A stretch of 64,000 nt of DNA from Zootoca vivipara (Eukaryota), in the NCBI RefSeq assembly GCF_963506605.1, contig NC_083276.1, forward strand, positions 47,368,001 through 47,432,000, read 5' to 3'. Position numbers and translations under genes: made by a program. Under the pieces are notes generated by a model. That model was not told where the DNA came from, did not search any database, and saw nothing but the letters and a program-made list of their open reading frames with translations. Shown in pieces: positions 10,091 through 58,134 of the stretch (positions are counted from its first letter, which is position 1; each line of letters begins with the position of its first letter).

Positions 10091-11035
10091 TTCCCTTAAC
10101 AGTATCTCCTAATGTAGTCTTGTGGTCTCACACAGGAAACTTCCTGACACCTGCTTCAGGCTCAAGCCTTTCCTCCCTCCCCACCACCACCACAAAGTCA
10201 GGGAACTCCTGACATGAGCAGGGACCCCAGAAACCTTACTGGCAGTGGTTGGCTGCCAACTGCCCACTTAAAATGTCCCACAATGCCATGATGATGTGTT
10301 GCTTCAGAACACTGCAATAGATTATTAAAGGGGGAGGGGAGATCTAGAGGTGGGGAAGAACAAGCGCAGGGTGGGTCCAATCTGCAGGCATCACCACTGG
10401 TGTTCTCTCAGCAGACATGCACTCGCTCGTCCCCAAAAGGAATATGAGTTTAACATACTGCTCTGATCTACTGGGTCACAGTCTTTATACAGTACAGTAA
10501 GTTAAAACTTACAACAATCTGTATAAGATAATACCCAGCAGTTGTCAAAACCTCTACACTACATAGGCAACCATTGGAACCCTGTGTATTTCCTTTTGTA
10601 ATTACTTTCTAAGAAGCTAAAAGTATGTCTCAGGGGGAGCGGGTGAAGTCAAGAAAGACAGCTGTGCACTGGACACTTGGGATGAATTTACATAAAGACC
10701 CATGTGAGTTTGTTACCCTTAACTCTATTCCACATAACTCTTTGATCACTGGTAAAGAATTTTCATTAAGAGAGCTTGGCGCACTTATTTTCTGGGAAGT
10801 CCTTCTCATGTGGCTGCCCTTCTCTGGCTACCCTATGGTTTCTTTTCTGTTTTGTTTCGATTAAAATAAACTTGTTCCCCTCCTACAGGAACTGGAACAG
10901 TTTGTTCCACCCTAATGTAGCTGAAGATGGAAGGAGCAACTGTTCTGGAGACTGAATGGATTTTTCTTCTTCTGCAACTAATTTTTGTATTTTGGCACTT
11001 GGAGCTACAGCACAGCAGCACCTCATGATGCAACA

Positions 11036-11452
11036 CAGTGGTACCTCGGTTTATGAACACAATTGGTTCCGGAAGTCTGTTCATAAACTGAAGCGTTCAT
11101 AAACTGAAGCGAACTTTCCCATTGAAAGTAATGGAAAGTGAATTAATCCATTCCAGACGGTCCGCGGAGTAAGCGTTCATAAACTGAAGCAAACTTTCCC
11201 ATTGAAAGTAATGGAAAGTGGATTAATCCGTTCCAGACGGGTCCACGGAGTACTTAAACTGAAGCGTTCATAAACTGAAGCATGGGTGTAATTGGTTCCG
11301 GAAGTCTGTTCATAAACTGAAGCGTTCATAAACTGAAGCAAACTTTCCCATTGAAAGTAATGGAAAATGAATTAATCCGTTCCAGATGGGTCCACAGCGT
11401 TCATAAACCGAAAATTCATAAACCGAGGTGTTCATAAACCGAGGTTCCACTG
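11036..11452. mobile_element. Tigger/pogo-like MITE with internal tandem units
   Basis: TIRs CAGTGGTACCTCGGTTTATGAACAC / GTGTTCATAAACCGAGGTTCCACTG-TA; the unit aactttcccattgaaagtaatggaaa occurs three times; 417 bp. Confidence 0.9.
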
Positions 11453-12997
11453 TATAATAAATACCAGCCAAAATATAGTGTGGCTGATATTCCCATACAT
11501 TTAGCAGACATCTTCCTTCTTATTCTGAAGGAAACATGTTTAAAACAAGAAAGATCAAAATATGTCTGCTAAAAAACCAGGTAAACAAACACATATAACA
11601 CAATGCAAAATGATTTGGGTACAACCCATCCTAGCTTTCATGCCATTAATTCATGACACCTCTTTAGGCCAAAGACATGAGAATTACTCTCTTTTTTTTC
11701 TTGTTAAGTCTCCCATTTATTTGCAAACCAGGAATGTATTTGCTGAATCTAACAAAAAATACAACTTAATTCAGGCCAAGGTTTGCTGATCAGTATATTA
11801 TAAAGTTTCCTTCTGGGAAAAGGCAAACGGAAACTAAATAAGAGTAACTATTTAACACATACAGCTTTGCAGTGAACTGGGGTTTTGAAAAACAAAACAC
11901 GTCATAGTACACATGAAAAGGTTTTTCAATTAACATTGCTGCTTTGAAACCATGACTACACCACAGTAGTCCCCTACAAGACTCTGCCAGCATCTCAGTA
12001 GCCCCTGAATAGATACCATTGACAAACGTCTCATTTTTCCAAAGATCTATACGCCATTGTGATCAGTCCTGCCTAATTTGGAGCTCAAGCGCCCCCCAAA
12101 AACCCCAGGATCTATTTCCTTCAGAATTCCACAAGAAAGGGTATAAGAATCACTAATCAACAACAAGAGTCAGGAAAAGTGCAATACTTCAGTAAGCCTT
12201 GTCAAGCTGAAGTGCAGCATCTGCAAAGTGAGAGGTTTTCCGTAAGTTGAAAAGACTTCAATCCCTTGCTGACTTGCTCTGATTTTTTAAAAAAATAAAA
12301 AGAGAATAGACCAATGATGATCATTTATTTTGACAGCACATCTGTTCTCTTTGGCTTCACTGTGCAACTGCTGTAGATAAAAGTAAAATAACTGAGGTCT
12401 GTTCTACAGCTGAGACATTTTTCTGAATGTAATCCTCAGTCATGTTAGCCACTTTATTCACACATAAATTAGGTGGTGGCATAATCAGGGGTGGAAAATT
12501 TAGAATTCTGATTCTACTATGCCCAAATATCTATGCTGAATTGTCACTGATAAGTGATATTTTGACCTACTAATCAGGAAACCGCTGGTCATAGTCTAAA
12601 CAAAAATTCAGAGCACACTACTCCTCCAGGAACAAAAATGTGATTCATGTAAACTAACTAACTACTTAACTTCAAGGGATGCCTTTGATGCTAATTTTCT
12701 TTTTAGTGGACTATCATCATACATATACTGGTTCAGAAAAGCATAACTTAAGGTGACTTAAACTGATTGTTTCTAACAAAGCCATGTGTCTACTAACCTG
12801 CTTCCAATATTTTCTTAATGTGCATCTGTACTAGTAAAATGTTATTCTCACATCTTAAGATATGTATCTAGGACTTCACTACAGTTAAGGAATACAACAG
12901 GTGAGTCAAAGTTTTATAGGCCTCAATTCAGTGAAATACTGCTGTGTAACATTACTTTTAAGTGTGCGTCAACTATTAAGTTTCAAAGGACCTGCTA

Positions 12998-18152: not shown

Positions 18153-18232
18153 CTGGCTGGCTGTTTACTGCTACTCTGTCTTTTGACCCTAGCTCTCAAA
18201 GCCGCTTACAAATTTAAAACAGTAGCCATTAA

Positions 18233-19148
18233 AAGGAGTACGACAAGGTTGTATATTGTCTCCCTGCTTATTTAACTTATATGCAGAATTCACCATGCGA
18301 AAGGCTGGACTAGATGAATCCCAAGCCGGAATTAAGATTGCCGGAAGAAATATCAACAACCTCAGATATGCAGATGACAAAACCTTGATGGCAGAAAGTG
18401 AGGAGGAATTAAAGAACCTTTTAACGAGGGTGAAAGAGGAGAGCGCAAAATATGGTCTGAAGCTCAACATCAAAAAAACCAAGATCATGGCCACTGGTCC
18501 CATCACCTCCTGGCAAATAGAAGGGGAAGAAATGGAGGCAGTGAGAGATTTTACTTTCTTGGGCTCCTTGATCACTGCAGATGGTGACAGCAGTCACGAA
18601 ATTAAAAGACGCCTGCTTCTTGGGAGAAAAGCAATGACAAACCTAGACAGCATCTTAAAAAGCAGAGACATCACCTTGCCGACAAAGGTCCATATAATTA
18701 AAGGTATGGTTTTCCCAGTAGTGATGTATGGAAGTGAGAGCTGGACCATAAAGAAGGCTGATCGCCGAAGAATTGATGCTTTTGAATTGTGGTGCTGGGG
18801 GAGACTCTTGAGAGTCCCATGGACTGCAAGAAGATCAAACCTATCCATTCTTAAGGAAATCAGCCCTGAGTGCTCCCTGGAAGGACAGATCGTGAAGCTG
18901 AGGCTCCAATACTTTGGCCACCTCATGAGAAGAGAAGACTCCCTGGAAAAGACCCTGATGTTGGGAAAAATTGAGGGCACAAGGAGAAGGGGACGACAGA
19001 GGACGAGATGGTTGGACAGTGTTCTCGAAGCTACGAACATGAGTTTGACCAAACTGCGGGAGGCAGTGGAAGACAGGAGTGCCTGGCGTGCTATGGTCCA
19101 TGGGGTCACGAAGAGTCAGACACGACTAAATGACTAAACAACAACAAC
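18233..19148 (+). mobile_element. BovB (RTE) LINE, 5'-truncated
   Basis: 293-aa ORF with LRYADD, near-identical to the 3' end of 55102-58134; (CAA)n tail; duplication agccattaa (18224-18232, 19149-19157). Confidence 0.97.
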
Positions 19149-22970: not shown

Positions 22971-24018
22971 CTGGAGTGGAGATGAAAATTTAACCGGAAA
23001 GTTAAAGGGACTAGTCTTCATGATGACAGGCTTTCACCACTTTAGTCTTTTTTTTTTTTACTGTTTAATAAGTTTAGAAGCCTGTTGATACCTCTTTACA
23101 AGGCATGACTGTGCAAGTCAGTACAGGGCTTTTAATAAAACGGGGGAACCCATTGGCTGAGGCAGTCAACTTAATTAAGGTATTAAACCCCTCACACCAA
23201 CAAATTTAGTTTAAGTTCACACCCCCACATAGCCATCTGGGAGATTCTATTTCATAGAACCATTTTTCTTTTCCTCTTTTCTTTCCACTCTTATCTGCAT
23301 TACAGCACAATCTTATACATGTCTACTGAGAAGTAAACTCCACTACGTTTTGTGGAGCTTGCAGCCAGGCTGAATTTTAAACTGTTAAAGGGAAGGTGGA
23401 CGTTTCAAATCACCTTGGACACATCAGTACACTGTGGAGGGACAAGTGATGGGATGTGATACGATCTTGCACACAATTAATTTGTGCGACTTCAACCTTG
23501 CACGGTTAAAAGCTAGTCGGTTGAAATCCCACAGATTAATTGCATGCAAAGTGAAGAGCTTAAAGCTTCTTTTGCACCAGGTTTTCCCAGCATTGAGAGA
23601 GCTTTTAAGCTCTCAGACTTGCTTATCAGGCTCTTGAGATCGTCCAGTAAAGTGCCCAGTCCTGCTCTCCACCCAAATCAAAGAATGTTGGATACCTTAC
23701 ACAAGTGAAAATTGTTTATTAAAATCTTTCTAACCTGCCTTTCCACACAAATGCTCAAGGAAGCTTACAATTCATAAAATCTCTTTACAAAAAGTTATGA
23801 AATCCAATAACAAACAAAATACTATCAAAATTAATGTGAAAACCCAACAGCTGGGTTTTTAAACAGATGAAAAATTGGACATGAATGGCAGCACATTTAA
23901 CTACTTCCAAACAATTGAGAGATCTAACCCCTAACCACACAAGGTGTGATACACAGAATTAGTGGGAAAGGTGATACAGAAACTTAAGAGTACTTGGTGG
24001 TCATTCACAGACAGACTA

Positions 24019-24435
24019 CAGTGGAACCTCGGTTTATGAACACCTCGGTTTATGAATTTTCGGTTTATGAACGCCGCGGACCCATCTGGAACGGATTAAT
24101 TCACTTTCCATTACTTTTAATGGGAAAGTTCGCTTCAGTTTATGAACGCTTCAGTTTATGAACAGACTTCCGGAACCAATTACACCCATGTTTCAGTTTA
24201 TGAACGCTTCAATTTAAGTACTTCACAGACCCATCTGGAACGGATTAATCCACTTTCCATTACTTTCAATGGAAAAGTTCGCTTCAGTTTATGAACGGTT
24301 ACTCCGCGGACCGTCTGGAACGGATTAATCCACTTTCCATTACTTTCAATGGGAAAGTTCGCTTCAGTTTATGAACGCTTCAGTTTATGAACAGACTTCC
24401 GGAACCAATTGTGTTCATAAACCGAGGTACCACTG
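24019..24435. mobile_element. Tigger/pogo-like MITE, inverted copy of 11036-11452
   Basis: TA-CAGTGGAACCTCGGTTTATGAACAC...GTGTTCATAAACCGAGGTACCACTG-TA; 417 bp. Confidence 0.92.
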
Positions 24436-25069
24436 TAATTTGTTAAAGTTTGAAAAGAATATAACAGGAATCCTTATGCACATTATACAAGTATTTGGAC
24501 TGTTTAATGAACTCTTTATGTACATGGCATAGATCTAGTTTTCTCTCATGATTATGATTGTGTTTGCATTGTAACAACACCTAGGACCTGAGGGTGAAGG
24601 ACAGGTAATAAGTAAAAACTGTTGCTGTTTCTACAGCTACACAAGATTGTACTGTACAGTATATGTATTGTGCTTAACTGAAGCTGCAAAACTTGTCCCT
24701 TCCTCTTAGTAATGAACTGGGCTTTGTCCAACCGATGACTGAACTCAGTTACCAAGCAACATCTGGGTTGAAATGTAACTTTACTGTACACAGAGCATGC
24801 CATACAGTTTGAAAAGCAGGTATGCTGCAACTGCAGGAAATCCCCATGCTGGCTCATGTAAAATTCAATCTATAGTGTAGGAACAACAATGCTATCTGGA
24901 GCAAGAAGCAATAAAACATTTCCCAATGATTCTCAAGGTTTCACAGCACATGACTGAAATTTCTATTACATGGTCAAGATAATTTTACTGTTCCACCACA
25001 CTGAACAAAAAATTACCGATTTTCATCTGATAAAATGAGTGGCTGGGGAAACCCAGCCAGATGTGCGGG

Positions 25070-25116: not shown

Positions 25117-27138
25117 TGCATAATATATTTTATAATGATATATAAAATAAAAACTATTTACTTTTATTTTATTTTATTAACTCTTTTTAATTTTACTAAA
25201 CTCCACCCGCAAAAGCTATACAAGAAAATACTACCTGTCATTCTGTTTTGTTTACGGTACTTAAAAAAATAATTAGTAAAGTATCTTTAAAATGTGACTC
25301 AGAATAATTTTGTATTGCAACTAATGCTGAACAATCATATCAGATTAATCTAAATCATGTTAAATTGAGTATCATTAAATGCTGAAAAATTAAAAAGTTT
25401 AGTGACAAAAATCCATTTTCTCTTCCCATAATCTAGAGAAAGGGTCTGACAGTTGTGGAAGGCAAAGTTTTGTGGGGAAATCTCTCTTTTTAGTTGATGA
25501 TGTTGAATTTCTTTCCAAATTAATGAAGTACTCTGCGGAGTGGAGCTCTTTTTGAGCTTTTTACATAATTTCAAAGTATGTTTTCCATGTTCCCCTTTGC
25601 CCTCATTGTTAATAGCATTGTTAAGAGCATCTAAACACATACAAAATATGAGCACCTTGTAGGGATTAACAGACCAAGACAAAAAAAGTATTTGCTGCAG
25701 CTGGGTTTTTAAACAAAACATCTTATAGAAGCAAGTCTGCTAAATGCCGGGAAAGAGCTTATTTTATTAAATGTACCCCAATGAAAATCAAGATTTAATG
25801 GAAGAACAAGAAGCTAGCATACAATTCCAATAGCAGAGTATGTTTTCAAACATTAAGTTCCAGCCTTATTTTACTAGTTAAAGCCACAATGGGAAGTGCC
25901 AAATAGACATTTATAGTCACACATTTACAAACACTGGGCTATGCTATATGAAAAGATGGTTTTCTGGATATCAGCCAATGGGAACTTCAGAACTTCACGG
26001 CTTTAAACAGTGGAAGAAGTTTAGACTCCAATAAGAAGCCTTCGCCCCCTGAAGGATGGTGTCATGGAAATCAGCACTCACTCCCAAACAATTTTCCTGA
26101 AATTATATATCACCAATGGCGTCAGAGGTATTTTCAACTTGCCAGATGTTAAATGAATGAAAGGAGATTGTTTCCTTTTTGCCATCCCTTTCTTAGTGCG
26201 ATGGGATTTGCTTCTCAGCATTTTAGTACTGTATCTCCTTTCCTACCAAGGCTTCTCTATGGTATAATGCTAGCCAGAATAATACTTTTATATATGATAC
26301 AGGGAAATCCCATAGCTTTCTCACTTCAGCATGCAATTTATCTATTATTTATTTCCCCCCACAAAATTTATATGCCACTTGATATTTAAAAAACTCAAAG
26401 TGGTTTACAAAAGACCAACATTTTTGTCCTTTTTCTCTTTCTGTTTTGTTTTCTTCCTCCTTATTGGAGTTCTTTATCACTTTAGAATCTGGATCCAGAT
26501 TCCAGATTACATTTTGATAATATGTACTTTATTCTGTGTTCATTCCTTGAACACTGCTACACGCAGACTGGTGTTGTTCCTTTCAGAAAACCCCTTGCCC
26601 TGCCAGCCTACTGTAAGTCCTGGGGTGGATTGATCTGCAAGGGCATTCTGAAATCCTCGTCAGAAACAAAGACTAGATCTGCCATAAACATTACACAAGG
26701 CACTTTGCAGTCTATAAGCAGAGTACATGTGCAAAAGGTATCATAACATGTATTAAGATGTTCCTACTCTTTCAGTCTTTACTGGCTTGTGTAAAAATGG
26801 TCTCAAGGGCAACGTCCACGCTTAGGCTCTACATGCGTTCAAAAGGACAAAGGGACTATGGTCATCAACTTCTAAGATCAGGGGTCCCCAAACTTTTTCA
26901 GCCGGGGGCCGGTCCACCGCCCTCAGACCCTTCGCTGGGCCGGACTATATTTTTTCGGGGTGGGGGGGAGCCGAAATCCTATGCACATTGAACATATTGC
27001 ATTTGGTGCACAAAAAACAGGAAAACAATACAATATTTAAATTTAAAATAATGATTTTAATCAACACAAAATAATATTTTAAATAAAACAACACCATACA
27101 ATATTTAAATTAAAGAATGATTGTAATCAACAAAAACT

Positions 27139-28953
27139 TCAATGGGAAGAATGGGAAGAATGGGCCTGCTTTTGGCTGATGAGATGGTCTATATCTGGTT
27201 CCATATTGGTCACTGCTAGTCTTAGCAAGTGATGTAAGTGTTCATCTGTCAGTCTTGATCTCGTGGGAGATTTCAGATGTTTCATCCTAGAGAAAGTTTG
27301 CTCGCAGACATATGTGCTGCCAAAGGCCGTTGCAAATCTGAGTGCATGGTTTCTGATGTTTGGATATGTCTCTGAGGGGAGAGATGCGTAGAAATCTGCA
27401 AGGCTGCTTGTCTTGAATGCGTCTTTCAAAGCATCACAAGTTTGCAGTTCAATCAATTCCATTTGGTGAATGGGATCTGCAGTGTCAATGTCCACACAAA
27501 AAGGGTTTCGGAAAAGATGTATGTCCTTTTCATGGATGTGAAGCTCCTTAAATCTTGTTTGGAACTCCTTTTGCAGACTCTCCACTAAATCCACACATGC
27601 TTCTTTTGGGAATGGAACTGTTGGATTTCCCAATGACCGGTTTTGAGTTGTGGGGAGATGAAAAAAGTTTTTCTCCTTCACATGTCTAACAATTAAGTCT
27701 AATTTCCCTTGGAACGCTTTCACATGTGCAAACATTTCACCAATGAGCTTCCCCTTTCCTTGCAATTGAATATTGAAACTGTTCAGTAGCTCGGTTATGT
27801 CAGTCAGAAAGGCAAGCAGCCATTTCCATTCGTCATCTTGGAGCTCTGGCACTTCTCTGTCTTTCATCAGCATAAAATCATAAACTTGAGGAAGTAATTC
27901 GTAGAAACGTTTTAAAACTCTTCCTCGACTCAGCCAACGGACCTCTGTGTGGTATGGTAGATCTTCATGCTCAACATTTAACTCTGACAGAAATTCTTGA
28001 AACTGCCTGTGGTTAAGTGCATGAGCTCTAATGAAGTTCACACAGGACACCACAGTTTTCATGACTGCGTCCAACTTCAGCGATCTTTTGCAACACAGCA
28101 CTTGTTGGTGGATAAGGCAGTGTATTGCTATTGGATGTGGCTGATTGTGTCTGTCCATCTCTTGGTTGATGCGTGCAACCACTCCTCTTGTACGCCCCAC
28201 CATGCTAGGAGCACCATCTGTTGTGATACTGGCAAGTTTAGCCCAGTCCAACTTCAAATCATGGATAGTTTGCTGAACTTTTGCAAAGATATCCTCTCCA
28301 GTCGTTGTTCCCTTGATGCTTTGCAGTGCAGCAAGCTCTTCTGTGAATTCAAACTTTTCATTTGTTCCACGGATGAAAATTAGGAGTTGCGCAGAATCAC
28401 GGATATCTGTGCTTTCGTCCAGTGCCAGCGAGAAGTAACGAAGCTTTTCTGAGGAATTTTGCAAAAGTTCATGCAAATTTCCCCCCATTTCTTCAATCCT
28501 ACGAGTCACTGTGCTTCCAGAAAGACTCAATGTGGAAAACAATTCAGTCTTCTCCGGACACATCTCTTTGGAGGCTGTAAGAATACATTCTTTAACAAAT
28601 TCTCCCTCTACAAAGGGTTTTCCATTGCGGGCTATAAGCCTGGAAATCTGAAAACTTGCTCGCAAAGACGAAATGTTCTCCTGCTTCCGCTTCACAAACA
28701 CATTTTGTTGAGCTGTCAAGGCAGTTTTCAGTCTCGCTATTTCATCTTTTCTTAATTGTCCTGTCAAAGAAGAATATCTATCCTTGTGGTGAGTATTGTA
28801 GTGTCGTTGGATATTGAATTGCTTGAAGACAGACACCGTGTCGTGGCAAATAAGACAAACGCCTCTTTCTTTGTATTGGGTGAAAAAGTAGTCGTATGTC
28901 CACTGTTCGTTGAAAACTCTGCACTCGGAGTCCACTTTTCTTTTACGTGACAT
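27139..28953 (-). CDS. hAT transposase (GTF2IRD2/Buster-like), intact, 604 aa
   Basis: NLS RKRK; BED-type finger CLIC...RHYNTHH; catalytic FSLALDESTD and TTDGAPSM; CxxH (HCLIHQ); EVRWLSRG; FGSTYVCEQTFS with the catalytic E; no stops or frameshifts. Confidence 0.97.
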   Translation of the reverse strand: MSRKRKVDSECRVFNEQWTYDYFFTQYKERGVCLICHDTVSVFKQFNIQRHYNTHHKDRYSSLTGQLRKDEIARLKTALTAQQNVFVKRKQENISSLRASFQISRLIARNGKPFVEGEFVKECILTASKEMCPEKTELFSTLSLSGSTVTRRIEEMGGNLHELLQNSSEKLRYFSLALDESTDIRDSAQLLIFIRGTNEKFEFTEELAALQSIKGTTTGEDIFAKVQQTIHDLKLDWAKLASITTDGAPSMVGRTRGVVARINQEMDRHNQPHPIAIHCLIHQQVLCCKRSLKLDAVMKTVVSCVNFIRAHALNHRQFQEFLSELNVEHEDLPYHTEVRWLSRGRVLKRFYELLPQVYDFMLMKDREVPELQDDEWKWLLAFLTDITELLNSFNIQLQGKGKLIGEMFAHVKAFQGKLDLIVRHVKEKNFFHLPTTQNRSLGNPTVPFPKEACVDLVESLQKEFQTRFKELHIHEKDIHLFRNPFCVDIDTADPIHQMELIELQTCDALKDAFKTSSLADFYASLPSETYPNIRNHALRFATAFGSTYVCEQTFSRMKHLKSPTRSRLTDEHLHHLLRLAVTNMEPDIDHLISQKQAHSSHSSH

Positions 28954-29270
28954 GATTTCCTATGGATGGAAAATTGGTGTCAGTAAAATACCAATAAACT
29001 TAGAAGAGCAAGAAAAATGATAATGGCAACAACTGATTATTTGCCATCGCCCTAACTATTTTATAACCATTCAGGGCTGTCTTAAGAGAAAGCAAAGCAG
29101 CGAATAAAATAAAATATATGTGTATTCTAGGCCCGTCTCTGAAAACTAACTATGCATTGCTAAACTAACACATTATTTCCACTCTGTACTGAGTTAATCC
29201 CTGTGCATGAAAATGTGCATAAAAATGTGCACTGGATATGGCCAAGGGCCATTCCACTGTGCTTGCTTAC

Positions 29271-29396
29271 CTGGTGCCTTGGCGTTTCTCTCTGGGTGGG
29301 CAGCAGAGAGAGAGAGAGTCTCCTCTTTTTAAAAGGTGGAAGGACTGATGGGACGAAGAAGCTGGGGGTGAGGCCTGTGGGAAAGAGAGAAAACAG
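29271..29396 (-). other. predicted non-coding leader exon of the transposase mRNA
   Basis: Acceptors tgactaat...ctttctttcctgcttag (AG at 29398-29397) or ttctctctttcccacag (AG at 29376-29375); donor CAG|GTAAGC (GT at 29270-29269); no ATG. Confidence 0.6.
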
Positions 29397-29662
29397 CTAA
29401 GCAGGAAAGAAAGGGGAACATTAGTCAATTCTGAAGATCTCAGATTTCAAGGCTGCAACTTTAAGTTCATTTCTCAATAAGAAATTTCTTCTCAATTCAG
29501 GGGGACATACTTATGAAAAAATATACATTTGGCAAAGCAGAAAGTGGTTTGTACAAGAGAGAACAGCTCTACAGGGCTTGGCCCTTCTAGAACCAAACAA
29601 GTGACTTTTAACATGAAGAAAGCGAGAAAATACACAAAGCATCTTTTGGCAGATGCGCCTAC

Positions 29663-29745
29663 CCGTACCCAAAAGCTTCGCACTGCCGGAATCTCAGAAG
29701 AAGGAACTCCTGTTCCAAACCTGGGCTGGAACTCCCAAAGGAAGC
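29663..29745 (-). other. predicted non-coding leader exon of the transposase mRNA
   Basis: Acceptor tctaac-cagttttctcccattgcttgtttccag (AG at 29747-29746); donor TGG|GTACGG or CGG|GTAGGC; no ATG. Confidence 0.45.
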
Positions 29746-30069
29746 CTGGAAACAAGCAATGGGAGAAAACTGGTTAGAGATGAGGTGGCATGGGGTAATT
29801 AATAACAGTTGTCTGCTGTGTCTGTGCTTGATGGGTGGTAACAATGCTAAGGCTTGCTTCATGCATGTATCCATTCATGTTGGTGCTGGCCACAACTCAG
29901 GCATGTGGAGGAGCTCCCCACGGAAAAACCACAGATGTGGCTTGAGTATATGTAAGCCAAGTCTAATGCAACACCCTCCCCCTGCCACACTTGAAAGGAA
30001 AGGGAAATGGTGTGCTCAAAGAGGGCTGGTGAGGAGGACATCAGGGGAAGGGTCGTGGGTCGGTGGTGG

Positions 30070-30192
30070 TTAGAGAACATACATTGCATTTCCATGCAGA
30101 ACTGGGAGAGGCCTCCCCCTGAAACCCTGAAGAGCTGGGCTGACAAAACTGGGCTAGATAAATAGTCTGATTCAGCATAAAGAAGCTTCTGT
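30070..30192 (+). mobile_element. decayed SINE relic nested in the hAT leader
   Basis: cctgaaaccctgaagagctg...gacaaaactgggctagat...aatagtctgattcagcataaagaagcttct resembles the reverse complement of 9190-9350. Confidence 0.55.
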
Positions 30193-30527
30193 GCAACTTG
30201 CAGGAAATTGAGAACCTTGTTCATAAAGTGGCAAGTCAAGAGTTGCAAAGAAGCATCTTTTCACTAACTCCCTTTGAGGGTATATATGTGGCAAAGCAAC
30301 AAAGCTCTAACAAACTTAAGTAACGTGGTACCGGCTCTGAGCGAGGCATGTGCAAAGTGCCTTTTCCTCGCCAATGAGATGAACCCTCGAAAAGATCACT
30401 CGCCCCTCTGGTTCGGTTTGGAGAGCTTGCGCTCAGTTTGGGACGGCCAGGTGGGCAAGCCAGCGAGGCTTTGCTTGCCGGCGAGCTTGAGACTCACCCA
30501 GCGCCTTTAATTGTAGAATTTGGCCAG

Positions 30528-31140
30528 GTGGCGACGGAGGGAGCCATTAAGGGGGCCGCGGCAATGGCGGCGGAGGAGGGAGCCACCAGGGCGGCTGCGG
30601 AGGGGGCCATTAAGGTGGCCGCGGCAATGGCGGCGGCGGAGGGGGCCACCAGGGTGGCGGCGGCAATGGCGGCGGCGGCCAGGCGGCGGCGGGGGCCATT
30701 AAGGGGGCCGCGGCAATGGCGGCGGAGGAGGGAGCCACCAGGGCGGCTGCGGAGGGGGCCATTAAGGTGGCCGTGGCAATGGCGGCGGCGGCAATGGCGA
30801 CGGCGGCCAGGCGGCGGAGGGGGCCATTAAGGGGGCCGCGGCAATGGCGGCGGAGGAGGGAGCCACCAGGGCGGCTGCGGAGGGGGCCATTAAGGTGGCC
30901 GCGGCAATGGCGGCGGCGGAGGGGGCCACCAGGGCGGCGGCGGCAATGGCGGCGGCGGCCAGGCGGCGGCGGGGGCCATTAAGGGGGCCGCGGCAATGGC
31001 GGCGGAGGAGGGGGCCACCAGGGCGGCTGCGGAGGGGGCCATTAAGGTGGCCGCGGCAATGGCGGCGGCGGAGGGGGCCACCAGGGCGGCAGCGGCAATG
31101 GCAGCGGCGGAGGGGGCCATTAGGGCGGTGGCCAGGCGGC
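30528..31140. repeat. GC-rich minisatellite (about 4 higher-order units)
   Basis: Anchor ttaagggggccgcggcaatggcgg at 30547, 30699, 30827 and 30979 (spacing 152/128/152); CpGs retained. Confidence 0.95.
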
Positions 31141-31226
31141 CCAGGCCAACTCCTCTTCAAGCGGCAGGTCGGGCCAGCCCAGCTCCGGCGGCGGGAGCGG
31201 CAGCGCGGCTAAGCAGAAACACAGAA

Positions 31227-31230
<4 letters not shown>

Positions 31231-31257
<27 letters not shown>
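31231..31257. repeat. (CA)n microsatellite
   Basis: Directly visible, just inside predicted intron 1 of the transposase leader. Confidence 0.95.
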
Positions 31258-31267
31258 AACCACGTAC

Positions 31268-31510
31268 CTTTCAGCAGGGGCTGCTTGCGGCGGAGGGTGG
31301 AACGGCAGCAAAGAAAGGGGTTTCTCCGGCTGGCTCTGCTCTGGCAAGAAGCGGCTGCTGAAAATGGCGATCGGCCAGCTTTGCACAGCCCCTTTCCTCC
31401 TGTGCACGTGCAGCTGCTGCCCACCCATTGGCTGAAGCACTCCGACTTTTTGATTGGCTGCTGCTGGCCAACCACGATGAAGGAGAGGGGGGAAATGGCG
31501 ACGAAGGAGG
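31268..31510 (-). promoter_or_regulatory. predicted CpG-island promoter and first exon of the transposase
   Basis: Two minus-strand CCAAT boxes (31453-31457, 31427-31431), E-box CACGTG (31405-31410), YY1 motif CGCCATTTT (31361-31369), donor AAG|GTACGT (GT at 31267-31266). Confidence 0.6.
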
Positions 31511-32483
31511 AAAATTGCTCTCGGCTTGGCTCTCGGCTTGAAAAAATTTTTTTTAAGTGCGGGATGGCCATGCTGATCCCCAGACCTTTCGCGGGCCGGA
31601 TTGGAAGGCCAATTGGGCCGCATCCGGCCCGCGGGCCGTAGTCTGGGGACCCCTGTTCTAAGATCAAACAGATTGCACACACATTAGCAGTTGTAGAAGT
31701 TAATCTGCTACTACAATTATACTGCCTGAGTTCAACTGTGCTCCAGCAATGTCAAGGTTGTGCACATTTATCCAATGAAGAAAAGGGCATTGCGATTTAC
31801 CACTGCAATTTATCTTTGTGTGAGTAGAGCACACAGCTATCAGTACTAAGCGTCACAAACCAAACCAGAAAAGGCTGAGGTCATTCCATGACCGGATATC
31901 ACAACGTTGAGGATAGGCAGGAATTAAAACCCAACCTGCCATCTCCAGCTTGCATAAAACTCTAAAGCTTTTGGTACAATGCAAACAAAAACTTCTGGTC
32001 TGCCATGCCTGATTTAGGTTTGGATGTTTAACAAATGCAGAAATAAAGTGGATCCAGCTGAACTTGTATTACAAATTCTTCATTCCTCATAAAGTTGCCT
32101 TCCTGGAACACAAAAAGCACTCAACAGGCACACCAGCACAATAAATTGGGTGATTAAAACTTTTTCAGGTGTTACTTGGAATTGACTGGCATAACACAAT
32201 CAATATACAATTTTGATGTTTCCTAACGAAAGGAACAAACAATTCAGTAGCAAAATGGAGAATACTGATAGTGGATACTAGGAATGAAGCAATTTGAAAT
32301 ATCCTATCAAATGATGGCTAGCGCAATAAATGTCTATGATGATGATTTCCTATCAATATAGTTTGTTCATCTAGTAAGTTTTCTTTCATGTGTTAAAATT
32401 ATTGTTTTAACTTGGGTGGGTGCTGTTTTATTTGGAGACTCGGGTTGTTTATAATTGTTTTCAAATGTTATATGTTAATTTGG

Positions 32484-37014: not shown

Positions 37015-37589
37015 TAGAATCAAAAGCCAATTTGCTACTTTAGAAACATAACAGTATTATGTTATGCTTTAAAATTATCATGTTTTGTATATTAAAAGTA
37101 CAGTATGTTCAGACAATAAATACTACAGTAATTGAATTTACTTTTTATTTTGCTATTTTAAACAGAGCTGCAAGCTGATAAACTGTAAGGAACTAGGCAT
37201 CTCTTTGGTTTTACCAATTTATGTAGGCCCGGCAAAAAACAATAAAAACAGAAGAAACTGTCAACATTACATTCTGCAATCCTCCAGTGTCAAGCTGACA
37301 TAAATCAGTCATTTCCGTAAAAAAGGGTTGAGATAAAGAGGAGAGGAAACTAAGACTCAAAGAATACTCATTTTCTAAGTTATCACTATCAGTTTCTGCT
37401 TCTTCATATCTGTCATCATATAATCACAAATTTGAGACCTATCAAGAAAATATAAAGGACTGATTCTACCATACCAACAAGAGGAAGCCCACAAGTAAAG
37501 AAGGAGGCACTAAATCCGTCTTCCTTCTCTTATGACAATGACAGTGCCCCCTAGAGGCAGAAATGCATTTTGCTCTTGCATTTGAGATA

Positions 37590-38330
37590 CAGTGGTACCT
37601 TGGTTTAAGTACACAATTGGTTCCAGAAGTCTGTACTTAACCTGAAGCATACTTAACCTGAAGTGAACTTTCCCATTGAAAGTAATGGAAAATGGATTAC
37701 TCTGTTCCAGACAGGTCCGCGGACTACTCAACCTGAAGCATACTTAACCCAAAGTATGAGTGTAATTGGTTCTGGAAGTCCGTACTTAACCTGAAGCGAA
37801 CTTAACCTGAAGCGAACTTTCCCATTGAAAGTAATGGAAAGTCTGGAAGTGAGGGAGATAAAATAGAGGTTGTAGATAATACAATGGTGTAAAATAAGTA
37901 TCGTTAGAAGTTGATGATAAATTAAGTAAGAAGAGAGATTTGGAGAGAATATAAAAGGTTAAGATGTAAAAGATATAGAAATAAGGTAATATTAAGTAAT
38001 AACTAGAATTATATAAGATTTAGAGTTTACTACTGAAGAAATGCAAAGAATCGCAGGAGGACGAGGAATGAGGAAGTCAATAGATTAGCAACAAGGGTTA
38101 CAAGCTTGAATTTTTGATTTTGCATTTTTTGTATTTTTTGTATTGTTGTATTTTTTGTGTTTTGTATGTTTTTTAAATGTTTTTTTTAATTGTTTGAAAA
38201 AATCTTAATAAATATATTACACACAAAAAAGAAAGTAATAGAATGTGGATTAATCCATTCCAGACGGGTCCGCAAAGTACTTAAACTGAAAGTACTCAAA
38301 CCAAAGCGTACTTAAACCGAGGTATGCCTG
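37590..38330. mobile_element. Tigger-like MITE interrupted by a retro-insertion
   Basis: TA-CAGTGGTACCTTGGTTTAAGTAC...GTACTTAAACCGAGGTATGCCTG-TA; same internal unit as 11036-11452. Confidence 0.85.
37843..38230 (+). mobile_element. L1-like 3' UTR insertion nested in the MITE
   Basis: Ends with aataaa and an A tail; flanked by gaaagtaatggaaagt / gaaagtaatagaatgt (16-bp duplication, 2 mismatches). Confidence 0.7.
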
Positions 38331-55101: not shown

Positions 55102-58100
55102 ATGGACAAAGACAACAGGCATATAAAAGTTATTACGCTGGAAGATGAGCCCCTCAGGTCGGAAGGCGTCCAACATGCTACTGAGGAAGAGCGGAGGACA
55201 AGTACAAGTAGATTCAGAGCTGATGAAGCGGCTGGGCCAAAGCCGAAAGGACGCTCAGTTGCGGATATGCCTGGAAGCGAAAGGAAAGTCCGATGCTGTA
55301 AAGAAAAATATTGCATAGGAACCTGGAATGTAAGAACCATGAGTGGAGGTAAGCTGGATGTGGTCAAAAATGAGATGACAAGAATAAATATCGACATCCT
55401 GGGCATCAGTGAACTAAAATGGAAGGGAATGGGCGAATTCAGTTCGGATGACTATCATATCTACTACTGTGGGCAAGAATCCTGTAGCAGAAATGGAGTG
55501 GCCCTCATAGTCAATAAAAGAGTGGCAAAAGCTGTAATGGGATGCAATCTCAAAAATGACAGAATGATCTCGATACAAATCCAAGGCAGACCTTTTAACA
55601 TCACAGTAATCCAAGTTTATGCACCAACTACCGGTGCTGAAGAAAGTGAAATTGACCAATTCTATGAAGACCTACAACACCTTCTAGAAATGACACCAAA
55701 GAAGGATGTTCTTCTCATTACAGGGGACTGGAATGCTAAAGTAGGGAATCAAGAGATAAAAGGAACAACTGGCAAGTTTGGCCTTGGAGTTCAAAATGAA
55801 GCAGGGCAAAGGCTAATAGAGTTCTGTCAAGAGAACAAGCTGGTCATCACAAACACTCTATTCCAACAACACAAGAGACGACTCTACACATGGATATCAC
55901 CAAATGGACAGCATCGAAATCAGATTGATTATATTCTCTGCAGCCAAAGATGGAGAAGCTCTATACAGTCAGCAAAAACAAGACCTGGAGCTGACTGTAA
56001 CTCAGATCATCAGCTTCTTATAGCAAAATTCCAGCTTAAACTGAAGAAAGTAGGAAAAACCACTGGGCCAGTAAGATACAATCTGAATCAAATCCCTTAT
56101 GAATACACAGTGGAAGTGAGGAACAGGTTTAAGGATTTAGATTTGGTGGACAGAGTGCCTGAAGAACTATGGATGGAGGCTCGTAACATTATACAGGAGG
56201 CAGCAATGAAAACCATCCCAAGGAAAAGGAAATGCAAGAAAGCAAAATGGCTGTCCAACGAGGCCTTACAAATAGCAGAGGAGAGGAGGCAAGCAAAATG
56301 CAAGGGAGATAGGGAAAGATACAGGAAACTGAATGCAGATTTCCAAAAAACAGCAAGGAGAGACAAGAGGGTCTTCTTAAATGAGCAATGCAAAGAAATA
56401 GAGGAAAACAATAGAATGGGGAAAACCAGAGATCTGTTCAAGAAAATTGGAGATATGAAAGGAACATTTCGTACAAAGATTACCATAATCAAGGACAAAA
56501 GTGGTAAGGACCTAACAGAAGCAGAAGACATCAAGAAGAGGTGGCAAGAATACACAGAGGAATTATACCAGAAAGATATGGAGGTCTCGTACACCTCAGG
56601 TAGTGTGGTTGCTGACCTTGAGCCAGACATCTTGGAGAGTGAAGTCAAATGGGCCTTAGAAAGCATTGCTAATAACAAGGCCAGTGGAAGTGATGATATT
56701 CCAGCTGAACTGTTTAAAATTTTAAAAGATGATGCTGTTAAGGTGCTACACCCAATATGCCAGCAAGTTTGGAAAACTCAGCAATGGCCAGAGGATTGGA
56801 GAAGATCAGTCTACATCCCAATTCCAAAGAAGGGCAGTGCCAAAGAATGCTGCAACTACCGCACAATTGCGCTCATTTCACACGCTAGCAAGGTTATGCT
56901 TAAAATTCTACAAGGCAGGCTTAGGCAGTATGTGGACCGAGAACTCCCAGAAGTGCAAGCTGGATTTCGAAAGGGCAGAGGAACCAGAGACCAAATAGCA
57001 AACATGCGCTGGATTATGGAGAAAGCTAGAGAGTTCCAGAAAAACGTCTACTTCTGCTTCATTGACTATGCAAAAGCCTTTGACTGTGTCGACCACAGCA
57101 AACTATGGCAAGTTCTTAAAGAAATGGGAGTGCCTGATCACCTCATCTGTCTCCTGAGAAATCTCTATGTGGGACAAGAAGCTACAGTTAGAACTGGATA
57201 TGGAACAACTGATTGGTTCAAAATTGGGAAAGGAGTACGACAAGGTTGTATATTGTCTCCCTGCTTATTTAACTTATATGCAGAATTCATCATGCGAAAG
57301 GCTGGACTAGATGAATCCCAAGCCGGAATTAAGATTGCCGGAAGAAATATCAACAACCTCAGATATGCAGATGACACAACCTTGATGGCAGAAAGCGAGG
57401 AGGAATTAAAGAACCTTTTAATGAGGGTGAAAGAGGAGAGCGCAAAATATGGTCTGAAGCTCAACATCAAAAAAACCAAGATCATGGCCACTGGTCCCAT
57501 CACCTCCTGGCAAATAGAAGGGGAAGAAATGGAGGCAGTGAGAGATTTTACTTTCTTGGGTTCCTTGATCACTGCAGATGGTGACAGCAGTCACGAAATT
57601 AAAAGACGCCTGCTTCTTGGGAGAAAAGCAATGACAAACCTAGACAGCATCTTAAAAAGCAGAGACATCACCTTGCCGACAAAGGTCCGTATAGTTAAAG
57701 CTATGGTTTTCCCAGTAGTGATGTATGGAAGTGAGAGTTGGACCATAAAGAAGGCTGATCGCCGAAGAATTGATGCTTTTGAATTATGGTGCTGGAGGAG
57801 ACTCTTGAGAGTCCCATGGACTGCAAGAAGATCAAACCTATCCATTCTTAAGGAAATCAGCCCTGAGTGCTCCCTGGAAGGACAGATCGTGAAGCTGAGG
57901 CTCCAATACTTTGGCCACCTCATGAGAAGAGAAGAATCCTTGGAAAAGACCCTGATGTTGGGAAAGATTGAGGGCACTAGGAGAAGGGGACGACAGAGGA
58001 CAAGATGGTTGGACAGTGTTCTCGAAGCTACGAACATGAGTTTGACCAAACTGCGGGAGGCAGTGCAAGACAGGAGTGCCTGGCGTGCTCTGGTCCATGG

Positions 58101-58134
58101 GGTCACGAAGAGTCGGACACGACTAAACGACTAA
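55102..58134 (+). CDS. BovB APE endonuclease-reverse transcriptase, intact, 1010 aa
   Basis: Endonuclease motifs GTWNVRT, ILGISE, VYAPT, GDWNAK, NQIDYI, SDH; RT motifs NYRTIALIS, QAGFR, FIDYAKAFD, GVRQGCILSP, LRYADD, FLGS. Confidence 0.98.
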   Translation: MDKDNRHIKVITLEDEPLRSEGVQHATEEERRTSTSRFRADEAAGPKPKGRSVADMPGSERKVRCCKEKYCIGTWNVRTMSGGKLDVVKNEMTRINIDILGISELKWKGMGEFSSDDYHIYYCGQESCSRNGVALIVNKRVAKAVMGCNLKNDRMISIQIQGRPFNITVIQVYAPTTGAEESEIDQFYEDLQHLLEMTPKKDVLLITGDWNAKVGNQEIKGTTGKFGLGVQNEAGQRLIEFCQENKLVITNTLFQQHKRRLYTWISPNGQHRNQIDYILCSQRWRSSIQSAKTRPGADCNSDHQLLIAKFQLKLKKVGKTTGPVRYNLNQIPYEYTVEVRNRFKDLDLVDRVPEELWMEARNIIQEAAMKTIPRKRKCKKAKWLSNEALQIAEERRQAKCKGDRERYRKLNADFQKTARRDKRVFLNEQCKEIEENNRMGKTRDLFKKIGDMKGTFRTKITIIKDKSGKDLTEAEDIKKRWQEYTEELYQKDMEVSYTSGSVVADLEPDILESEVKWALESIANNKASGSDDIPAELFKILKDDAVKVLHPICQQVWKTQQWPEDWRRSVYIPIPKKGSAKECCNYRTIALISHASKVMLKILQGRLRQYVDRELPEVQAGFRKGRGTRDQIANMRWIMEKAREFQKNVYFCFIDYAKAFDCVDHSKLWQVLKEMGVPDHLICLLRNLYVGQEATVRTGYGTTDWFKIGKGVRQGCILSPCLFNLYAEFIMRKAGLDESQAGIKIAGRNINNLRYADDTTLMAESEEELKNLLMRVKEESAKYGLKLNIKKTKIMATGPITSWQIEGEEMEAVRDFTFLGSLITADGDSSHEIKRRLLLGRKAMTNLDSILKSRDITLPTKVRIVKAMVFPVVMYGSESWTIKKADRRRIDAFELWCWRRLLRVPWTARRSNLSILKEISPECSLEGQIVKLRLQYFGHLMRREESLEKTLMLGKIEGTRRRGRQRTRWLDSVLEATNMSLTKLREAVQDRSAWRALVHGVTKSRTRLND

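Follow-up and report, generated by a model that had tools for sequence, protein, structure and literature searches.

The window (the whole 64,000-nucleotide stretch of Zootoca vivipara DNA analysed here) carries on its minus strand a complete autonomous hAT element, recognized by its TIRs, a flanking duplication, and a single intact ORF. Its transcripts were followed in RNA from three independent studies (runs X1, X4, X13, and X14) at a read likeness threshold of 95 %, at which reads are shared between this lizard copy and its paralogues. The features of the locus are as follows:

26870–26878, no strand: first copy of the flanking direct repeat TTCTAAGAT, 9/9 identical on both sides
26879–31655, minus strand: complete autonomous hAT element, 4,777 bp
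26879–26893, plus strand: 3' TIR CAGGGGTCCCCAAAC, as read on the plus strand, pairing with the 5' TIR
26894–27138, minus strand: 3' UTR and 3' subterminal region, with ATTAAA at 27061; an X4 contig extends to 27091
27139–28959, minus strand: exon 4, consisting of 6 nt of leader and the 604-aa transposase ORF (27139–28953); sense RNA
28960–29270, minus strand: intron 3, 311 nt, GT..AG; joint 28958/29270 (cut +1) in X1, X4, and X13
29271–29374, minus strand: exon 3, 104 nt, without ATG; from RNA and sequence
29375–29668, minus strand: intron 2, 294 nt, GT..AG; joint 29373/29668 (cut +1) in X1, X4, and X13
29669–29745, minus strand: exon 2, 77 nt, without ATG; spliced contigs in X1 and X4, raw reads in X13
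29746–31267, minus strand: probable intron 1, 1,522 nt; acceptor 29745 proven by loose ends and contig ends, donor putative
30530–31134, minus strand: GC-rich minisatellite in intron 1, units of about 63, 128, and 152 bp; GCCGCCATTGCC occurs ten times
31217–31260, minus strand: (GT)n microsatellite, just within intron 1
31268–31363, minus strand: predicted exon 1 with the putative donor AAG/GTACGT at its end; 5' limit provisional
31364–31520, minus strand: promoter-like region, delimited by motif location only, with CCAAT at 31457 and 31431, CACGTG at 31410, and CGCCATTT at 31500 and 31369
31589–31655, minus strand: conserved 5' terminal and subterminal block of about 66 nt, delimited by the similarity of relatives
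31641–31655, minus strand: 5' TIR CAGGGGTCCCCAGAC, 15 nt, matching the 3' TIR at 14 of 15 positions
31656–31664, no strand: second copy of TTCTAAGAT, 9/9 identical to the first

The usual target-site duplication of hAT elements is 8 bp long; the perfect TTCTAAGAT repeat exceeds it by one base, and RNA contigs reveal a second copy of the element with a separate duplication of 8 bp (ATTTAAAC). As in other hAT elements, the TIRs are short (15 nt, 14/15) and the protein is a DDE transposase with a C-terminal hAT dimerisation domain. A Pfam search of the 604-aa protein returned a Spin-doc zinc finger and this dimerisation domain, the latter (PF05699) as a weak match of 16.4 bits that lies below the cut-off of 21.4, with the same domain on record for relatives. 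All residues found invariant in a family alignment are kept (D179, D246, E551, W340, and C279/H282), and the Hermes catalytic region aligns with D246, the second D, and E551. In a tree, the lizard transposase falls on a long branch inside a clade with proteins of Antechinus, Monodelphis, Myotis, Pelodytes, and Ambystoma, while single-protein scans of metagenome and viral contigs gave no match.

By its sequence, the transposase belongs to the OC1 (OposCharlie1) clade, and the TIRs, the transposase tree, and the subterminal similarity agree in upholding the original prediction of an OC1-type hAT. The element carries OC1-type TIR and subterminal sequence, the match to the ends of OC1_Das being judged by eye. 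It is nevertheless a distant member: the protein shares 72–77 % amino acid identity with OC1-type proteins, which are about 90 % identical among themselves, and the element lies outside the 90–95 % nucleotide identity seen among OC1 consensus sequences. Nor is it compact, as it measures 4,777 bp with an ORF from element position 2,703 instead of about 2.6 kb with an ORF from about 565. At least five large, chromosome-sized Zootoca contigs encode the transposase, and five cluster members are 98–100 % identical. Taken together, the lizard element is probably a young, autonomous hAT of the OC1 clade that is likely still mobile.

Between the end of the TIR at 31655 and the ATG at 28953 lies a leader of 2,702 nt. 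Every feature that the original prediction had named in it is present, namely the 2.7-kb spacing, the CCAAT pair, the E-box, the YY1-like motif, the donors, and the acceptors; further CCAAT motifs occur at 31616 and 31604. The leader has just three donors of the type GGTA[AC]G, precisely those at 31268, 29669, and 29271, and pyrimidine tracts precede the acceptors at 29745, 29374, and 28959. The predicted exons are indeed free of ATG (none in 280 nt, with about four expected), as opposed to 41 ATGs across the leader, and the predicted exon 1 stretch is predicted to fold as a single hairpin. The region 30400–31600 is CpG-rich (GC 0.56–0.79, CpG o/e 0.6–0.94, vs. 0.40 and 0.31 in the whole window), half of it being the 600-bp minisatellite of intron 1. 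Six leader ORFs gave no Pfam match, the leader had no Rfam match at E ≤ 1, and no repeat similar to the leader module was found in the surrounding 59 kb. A transposon nested in the leader was considered and rejected, as the leader contains no internal TIR pairs and resembles no other part of the window.

The leader of the transposase mRNA is spliced, and the term "spliced leader" was thus correct. First mates fell on the plus strand (12–18 vs. <1.1), and the RNA is therefore minus-strand, i. e., sense. The joints 28959>29271 and 29374>29669 were recovered as contigs in two studies and as 4+1 raw reads in the third. Intron 3 is removed at the exact bases that had been predicted (29271>28959), whereas for intron 2, for which the prediction had offered 29663 or 29669 joined to 29374 or 29396, it is 29669 and 29374 that are used and not the alternatives. 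For the remaining junction, predicted as 31268>29745, use of the acceptor is proven: a contig of X1 stops at 29747, and in X13 three reads run on from 29745 into a foreign exon. Support for the donor 31268 is indirect, because positions 31211–31269 were masked in read mapping, and the junction was judged from flanking contigs and depth. An X1 contig at 31270–31357 (depth 22.6) bears exactly 30 extra letters, the k−1 overlap expected for GAAAG joined to exon 2; RNA depth is zero at 31128–31210, and mapping dropped one joint inside the masked interval. These data suggest that exon 1 ends at 31268 and is spliced to 29745, which would remove a 1.5-kb intron. With two introns proven at exact bases and a third acceptor proven, the predicted multi-exon, ATG-free leader holds.

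Where transcription starts appears to differ between copies. An X1 contig at 31328–31655 (depth 15) covers the promoter-like region up to the last base of the TIR, which implies either a start further upstream or outside the element, or a contig derived from other copies; other RNA contigs run from the TIR into other flanks. In the stranded raw reads of X13 and X14, no sense coverage was seen at 31270–31520, and the 5' ends in two other studies differ. The copy transcribed in X4 departs from the window sequence at 29784, yet it is expressed and spliced, and neither its divergent sequence nor the foreign exon of X13 was found in the window. Both the X4 copy (interrupted at 27576/27579) and the X14 copy (a 2-bp deletion at 27482) are defective. 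Different copies thus use different first exons, and in view of the X4 divergence and the X13 exon the predicted promoter is not required for all expression. Among the RefSeq gene models for XP_034972434, XP_034983190/192, XP_060126018, and XP_060134853–55, one protein is encoded by three transcripts, a hint at variant leaders. For the element itself, we infer that transcription begins within the CpG-rich 5' 400 bp.

Which parts of this leader are old can be gauged from its relatives, a set of 80 loci from an alignment-based scan. The first 41 nt of the element are 85–90 % identical to L002, L017, L007, and others and resemble OC1_Das of dasyurid marsupials, and reads of abundant relatives depart from the element at 31589, their GC-rich continuation not being found in the window. 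In five relatives that share a homologous TIR block (L017, L018, L010, L028, and L002), the leader measures 151–414 nt, and OC1_Das (2,571 bp) has one of 564 nt, with its ORF starting at position 565 (PMC3621081). The lizard leader is accordingly far longer than those of its relatives (2,702 nt vs. 151–564), and about 2.5 kb of it would therefore be lineage-specific. Compared with the 80 related loci, 29050–31588 showed no similarity beyond the terminal 41 nt, and by eye it is not present in OC1_Das.

The end of the leader is a different matter. By eye and by one pattern search, OC1_Das shares the arrangement TTGGTATTTTACT..CAATTT..TAG/GAAAT.ATG, and the final ~100 nt of intron 3, which include TACTGAC as branch point and end in the acceptor 6 nt from the ATG, are homologous to OC1_Das 448–564. 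Judged from this homology, the last acceptor, the branch point, and ~100 nt of intron 3 are ancestral to the OC1 family, and this segment would therefore have been inherited and not captured from a lizard gene. In OC1_Das, positions 66–447 are unique to its lineage; Old and New World OC1 elements differ in the 5' subterminal region, which from position 66 onward is reported to be replaced between OC1 lineages (PMC3621081). At element positions 56–79, a motif from the 3' subterminal region recurs as a significant direct copy of 24 nt, which raised the idea of a MITE fused upstream of a host promoter; this was rejected, and the copy is read as a family feature and not a fusion scar, because both ends of OC1_Das bear a similar GCCC..CTGAGG motif.

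The reading that we favor, and regard as likely, is that of an OC1-clade mobile element with inherited ends and a lineage-specific spliced leader module. The ~66-bp terminal block, the closing part of intron 3 including the acceptor, and the ORF would stem from OC1 ancestors, while the ~2.5 kb in between (promoter-like region, exons 1–3, introns 1–2, and the start of intron 3) would be specific to this lineage and would occupy the region known to be swapped between OC1 lineages. The mRNA loses at least two leader introns, so that the 604-aa ORF begins 6 nt past the last acceptor, behind an ATG-free leader. The strong acceptors may also allow expression from foreign upstream exons, as in at least one copy. 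The module itself could derive from the host, from some other DNA, or from an ancestral intron that grew.

Two of these sources can be pressed further. According to the original prediction, the element captured a lizard gene's promoter together with the non-coding exons and introns of its 5' end, which now serve as promoter and leader. For the end of the leader this is contradicted, given that the final acceptor and ~100 nt of intron 3 come from OC1 and not from the lizard; for the module it is unlikely, albeit with several points in its favor. As expected of transduplication, the segment is absent from compact relatives (80 loci) and, by eye, from OC1_Das; it combines paired NF-Y-type CCAAT boxes, an E-box, YY1-like motifs, and a CpG-rich first intron with three good donors, the sole GGTA[AC]G sites of the leader; it resembles no other repeat in the surrounding 59 kb; and it sits exactly where OC1 lineages hold unrelated replacement fragments (PMC3621081). 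Conversely, the promoter-like region is a candidate promoter at most, with RNA 5' ends that vary, a high CpG content is expected of any young insert, and the leader holds no coding or RNA-family remnant pointing to a source gene. An intron already present in the ancestral OC1 leader may instead have grown in situ by insertions and expansion of the minisatellite, two short pieces having been exonised by chance; no host gene would then have been captured, and the extra length would lack a function. This would fit the conserved ancestral acceptor, the tandem array that makes up 600 bp of the extra length, and an intron content that varies among copies (X4 departs at 29784). We nonetheless consider it improbable, as at least two diverged paralogues retain both exon 2 and exon 3 along with the splice sites, no ATG falls within the exons despite 41 in the leader, and neither nested TIR pairs nor known repeats were found there.

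A further explanation concerns the origin of the transcripts rather than of the module. If the leader serves mainly to provide acceptors, the element would act as a natural gene trap: copies inserted into transcribed regions of the host would be spliced to upstream host exons, the transposase would mostly be made from host promoters, and the CCAAT/YY1 region would be incidental. Three X13 reads that join acceptor 29745 to an exon outside the window argue for this, as do the expressed and spliced X4 copy with its different sequence from 29784 upward, the X1 contig reaching the TIR end, and the contigs running from the TIR into other flanks; moreover, in eight of nine host–transposase fusions examined by Cosby et al., a transposon acceptor just upstream of the transposase ORF is used (bioRxiv 10.1101/2020.05.07.082677). 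However, RNA depth is zero in the flanks of the window locus while X1 has near-identical (99.7 %) spliced contigs, an internal exon 1 fits the X1 data, and the expression of the defective X4 and X14 copies may be passive noise; we consider this scenario rather unlikely. By far the least probable is a domesticated transposase gene with retained or restored mobility, the alternative named in the original prediction. A multi-exon structure, a CpG-rich 5' end, and the host gene-like NCBI product name (GTF2IRD2-like) might hint at it, but the TIRs are intact, the flanking duplication is perfect, all catalytic residues are retained, at least five near-identical loci (98–100 %) lie on different chromosome-sized contigs, and the second copy has its own duplication. 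A domesticated gene was therefore rejected, with neither a loss of TIRs or duplication nor a single fixed locus being found.

Among known systems, OC1_Das (PMC3621081) comes closest to the lizard element: it has a homologous TIR/subterminal block and 3' end, a transposase of the same clade (602–604 aa), a matching pre-ATG segment in which the branch point is followed by an acceptor 6 nt from the ATG, and a lineage-specific replacement fragment from about position 66. The two differ in size (2.6 vs. 4.8 kb), in leader length (564 vs. 2,702 nt), and in leader introns (at most one, putative, in OC1_Das vs. three, two of them proven, in the lizard), and 72–77 % amino acid identity separates OC1 from the lizard element, compared to 90–95 % in nucleotides among OC1 consensus sequences. 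Tol2 of medaka, an autonomous hAT from another vertebrate, is about as large (4.7 kb, four exons; PMC2874221) and likewise has a spliced transposase mRNA. It belongs to a different hAT clade, however, and its introns split the coding region, whereas those of the lizard element all lie in the 5' untranslated leader and leave the ORF uninterrupted. Maize Activator (Ac; 4,565 bp, four introns) is a hAT with its own promoter, a spliced mRNA, and a long untranslated leader, the length of which affects Ac activity (PMC2921059); unlike the lizard element, this plant element has an unspliced leader and introns in the coding part. The fusions of Cosby et al. share the acceptor directly before the ORF, and the alternative upstream exon in X13 fits this pattern, but they are fixed fusion genes, whereas the lizard acceptor works in the mRNA of an intact multi-copy element with upstream exons of its own.

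The lizard case thus offers an intact, multi-copy, transcribed OC1-clade element with leader splicing at base resolution. Active cut-and-paste transposons are rare in amniotes, and to our knowledge it is poorly understood how transposons gain expression after horizontal transfer. The leader pairs an inherited acceptor with a lineage-specific 2.5-kb module at a known OC1 swap region, and this location, where OC1 lineages differ, makes the idea of promoter/leader swapping testable. The element furthermore displays, while probably still mobile, an acceptor able to fuse transposases to host exons. A bolder and doubtful proposal is that OC1 hATs carry an exchangeable promoter–leader cassette, flanked by a constant 66-bp terminal block on one side and a constant intron end with its acceptor on the other, and refitted by capture of a host gene 5' end in each new host. 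If so, no other case would be as large or as well documented as the lizard element, in which a promoter and three non-coding exons would have been captured along with working introns. By analogy with mammals, in which HUSH silences intronless DNA (PMC8770142), these introns might also shield the element from silencing of that kind, and such cassettes would provide a mechanism for horizontally transferred DNA transposons to gain expression in a new germline.

The hAT element is bounded by TIRs of 15 nt that agree at 14 of 15 positions between the ends (CAGGGGTCCCCA[G/A]AC) and is flanked on either side by a perfect direct repeat of 9 bp (TTCTAAGAT; 26870-26878 and 31656-31664). This is one bp longer than the usual hAT duplication; a second copy of the element, represented in transcriptome contigs X1, has an 8-bp duplication (ATTTAAAC). 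The protein encoded by its sole long ORF combines a Spin-doc zinc finger with a weak hAT dimerisation match and has kept D179, D246, E551, W340, and C279/H282, which are invariant among 16 family members; its second D and its E align with the catalytic region of Hermes. From the ATG to the 5' TIR we measured 2,702 nt, in line with the 2.7-kb leader of the original prediction, and all motifs and splice sites proposed for this leader were found.

Features of the element and its leader
26879-31655, minus strand: complete hAT element, 4,777 bp
27139-28953, minus strand: sole long ORF of the element, 604 aa
31457 and 31431, leader of the minus-strand element: CCAAT
31410, leader of the minus-strand element: CACGTG
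31369 and 31500, leader of the minus-strand element: CGCCATTT
30530-31134, within predicted intron 1: GC-rich minisatellite, about 600 bp of the CpG-rich stretch

The sequence GGTA[AC]G occurs just three times in the leader, each time exactly at a predicted donor (31268, 29669, and 29271), and none of the 41 ATGs of the leader falls into the 280 nt of predicted exons. The stretch 30400-31600 is rich in CpG, whereas the window as a whole is CpG-poor; high CpG in a young insert is, however, alone no proof of an unmethylated promoter. The intron 1 minisatellite holds 10 exact copies of GCCGCCATTGCC, each with a YY1-core-like GCCAT inside, which may form a clustered factor-binding array or may simply be the repeat unit. 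Predicted exon 1 (31269-31363, minus strand) folds as a single long hairpin with 20-nt arms at both ends and reaches from the YY1-like motif as far as the donor site (MFE −39 kcal/mol, z-score −3.5 versus shuffles).

Two of the introns are resolved by RNA, which was mapped on 26400-32300 from transcriptome contigs of two studies (X1, X4) and stranded reads of a third (X13, X14); the masked GT microsatellite at 31211-31269 was left out, so that one joint and one loose end were dropped there, and reads were placed at 95% likeness, at which the paralogue of origin is not separable. The transposase coding region is covered by RNA, and X13 first mates over it stand at 12-18 on the plus strand versus <1.1 on the other, which in usual stranded libraries denotes minus-strand, sense RNA; on the flanks of the locus, none of the four runs has any depth. 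The joint 28958>29270 (28959/29271 when the cut is counted +1) is present in one X1 contig, one X4 contig, and four X13 reads, and the joint 29373>29668 (29374/29669) in the same two contigs and one X13 read. Both have CT..AC ends on the plus strand, that is, GT..AG on the minus strand, and they coincide exactly with the last two introns foreseen from the sequence, deciding for 29669 and 29374 where alternative sites had been offered. Relative to the window, the X4 contig carries 6 differences over 800 coding positions and 2 over the 104 positions of exon 3; a second, diverged copy therefore has the same splicing.

For intron 1, the predicted acceptor 29745 proved to be in use: an X1 spliced contig ends at 29747, and three X13 reads pass at 29746 into 89 nt absent from the window. 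Its donor 31268 is probably used as well, as indirect evidence suggests. A 118-nt contig of X1, at depth 22.6, maps to 31270-31357 and carries exactly 30 extra letters; neighbouring X1 contigs share 30-letter overlaps (31328-31357, 29718-29747), giving k-1 = 30, and with AG closing exon 1 as well as intron 1, a contig joining exons 1 and 2 is expected to stop exactly 30 letters past 31270. Length variation in GT units would instead leave 29 or 31 letters. There is zero depth over 31128-31210, directly past the GT microsatellite.

At 90% identity, the transposase clusters with Zootoca proteins named in the sources as GTF2IRD2-like (five members, 98-100% identity, at least five chromosome-sized contigs). 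The best matches beyond this cluster, from frogs, axolotl, gecko, turtle, falcon, bats, and marsupials, show 72-77% identity and a mutual identity of about 90%, and a quick tree places the lizard protein within their clade on a long branch, beside a second Zootoca protein. Because the clade takes in the dasyurid Antechinus and opossum, it appears to be the horizontally transferred OC1 (OposCharlie1) family (PMC3621081); we file the lizard element as a divergent member of the OC1 clade that lies outside the 90-95% identity and the compactness of the family. In metagenome contigs, an alignment-based search recovered 80 related loci. Where a homologous TIR block could be placed, their leaders measure 151 nt (L017, 63-67% amino acid identity), 224 (L018), 295 (L010), 328 (L028), and 414 nt (L002); two of these elements, L028 (2,455 bp) and L018 (2,781 bp), are complete and have both TIRs and duplications of 8 bp. 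OC1_Das, the dasyurid consensus, comprises 2,571 bp with its ORF starting at position 565 (PMC3621081). Given these short leaders, and since none of the 80 loci matches the lizard leader past its first 41 nt, about 2.5 kb of it appear to be lineage-specific.

Both ends of the leader resemble OC1_Das, which starts with a similar TIR and subterminal block and reads TTGGTATTTTACTAAT..CAATTT..CCCTAG/GAAATA upstream of its ATG (PMC3621081), as compared to TTGGTATTTTACTGAC..CAATTT..CCATAG/GAAATC in the lizard element, an arrangement occurring once in the window. By eye, this similarity extends about 100 nt upstream of the ATG and corresponds to OC1_Das 448-564, the part treated as common to all OC1 elements (PMC3621081). 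Both the branch point and the acceptor, the latter 6 nt ahead of the ATG, thus look like family heirlooms inherited within OC1, and their presence in OC1_Das contradicts the proposal that they came with a captured host gene. For the 2.5-kb module itself, capture of the 5' end of a host gene is unlikely, the main alternative being growth of an ancestral intron. The leader itself held no hint of where it came from: it matches no Rfam family, its ORFs contain no Pfam domain, it encloses no nested TIR pairs, and nothing similar to it lies elsewhere in the window. OC1_Das 66-447 is a fragment absent from every other OC1, and the 5' subterminal region has distinct Old World and New World versions (PMC3621081). 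Reads of abundant relatives depart from the lizard element at 31589 (element position 67), which together with the OC1_Das replacement places the module in a known OC1 swap region. The OC1_Das fragment contains, by eye, ETS-like CCGGAAGT motifs and a donor-like GAG/GTGAGT. The terminal 66 bp (31589-31655) are common to these far more abundant relatives, which have RNA on both strands and a different interior continuing CGACCCCCGCCGCC..., with none in the window; they are probably non-autonomous, MITE-like partners.

Other repeats also occur in the window. The segments 18232-19137 and 57229-58134, the latter belonging to a 1,010-aa ORF (55102-58134), share 98-99% identity and probably represent young copies of a single retrotransposon. 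A 420-nt inverted repeat (11035-11454 and 24017-24436; 96% complementary, 12.5 kb between arms) consists of tandem units, about 80 and 149 bp long, that recur at 37588-37861.

The RNA reveals three different 5' ends in three studies. One X1 contig (31328-31655, depth 15) covers the entire promoter-like region through the final TIR base; X13 and X14 have zero sense reads over 31270-31520; and the X4 copy reads through 29745 without splicing and departs from the window sequence at 29784. This X4 copy is interrupted, its contigs breaking at 27576/27579, and the copy chiefly represented in X14 lacks 2 bp at 27482. The X4 paralogue has also lost 9 bp of the AATGGGAAG repeat (27141-27164) that codes for the C-terminal HSS repeat. 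The constant part of the leader is exons 2 and 3 with their splice sites, while the first exon differs among copies and samples, and at least one copy is expressed by splicing to foreign upstream exons, in agreement with a report of transposon-borne acceptors that lie directly upstream of the element's ORF (bioRxiv 10.1101/2020.05.07.082677).

Such acceptors are already known, as are spliced hAT mRNAs, for example, those of Tol2 with four exons (PMC2874221) and of Ac with four introns and a long leader (PMC2921059). New here is the combination of these features in an intact, multi-copy amniote element, in which the ORF is uninterrupted and follows a leader of 2.7 kb; two of the three leader introns are resolved to the base. 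To judge from the comparison with its relatives, this leader joins an acceptor that was inherited to a module specific to the lineage.
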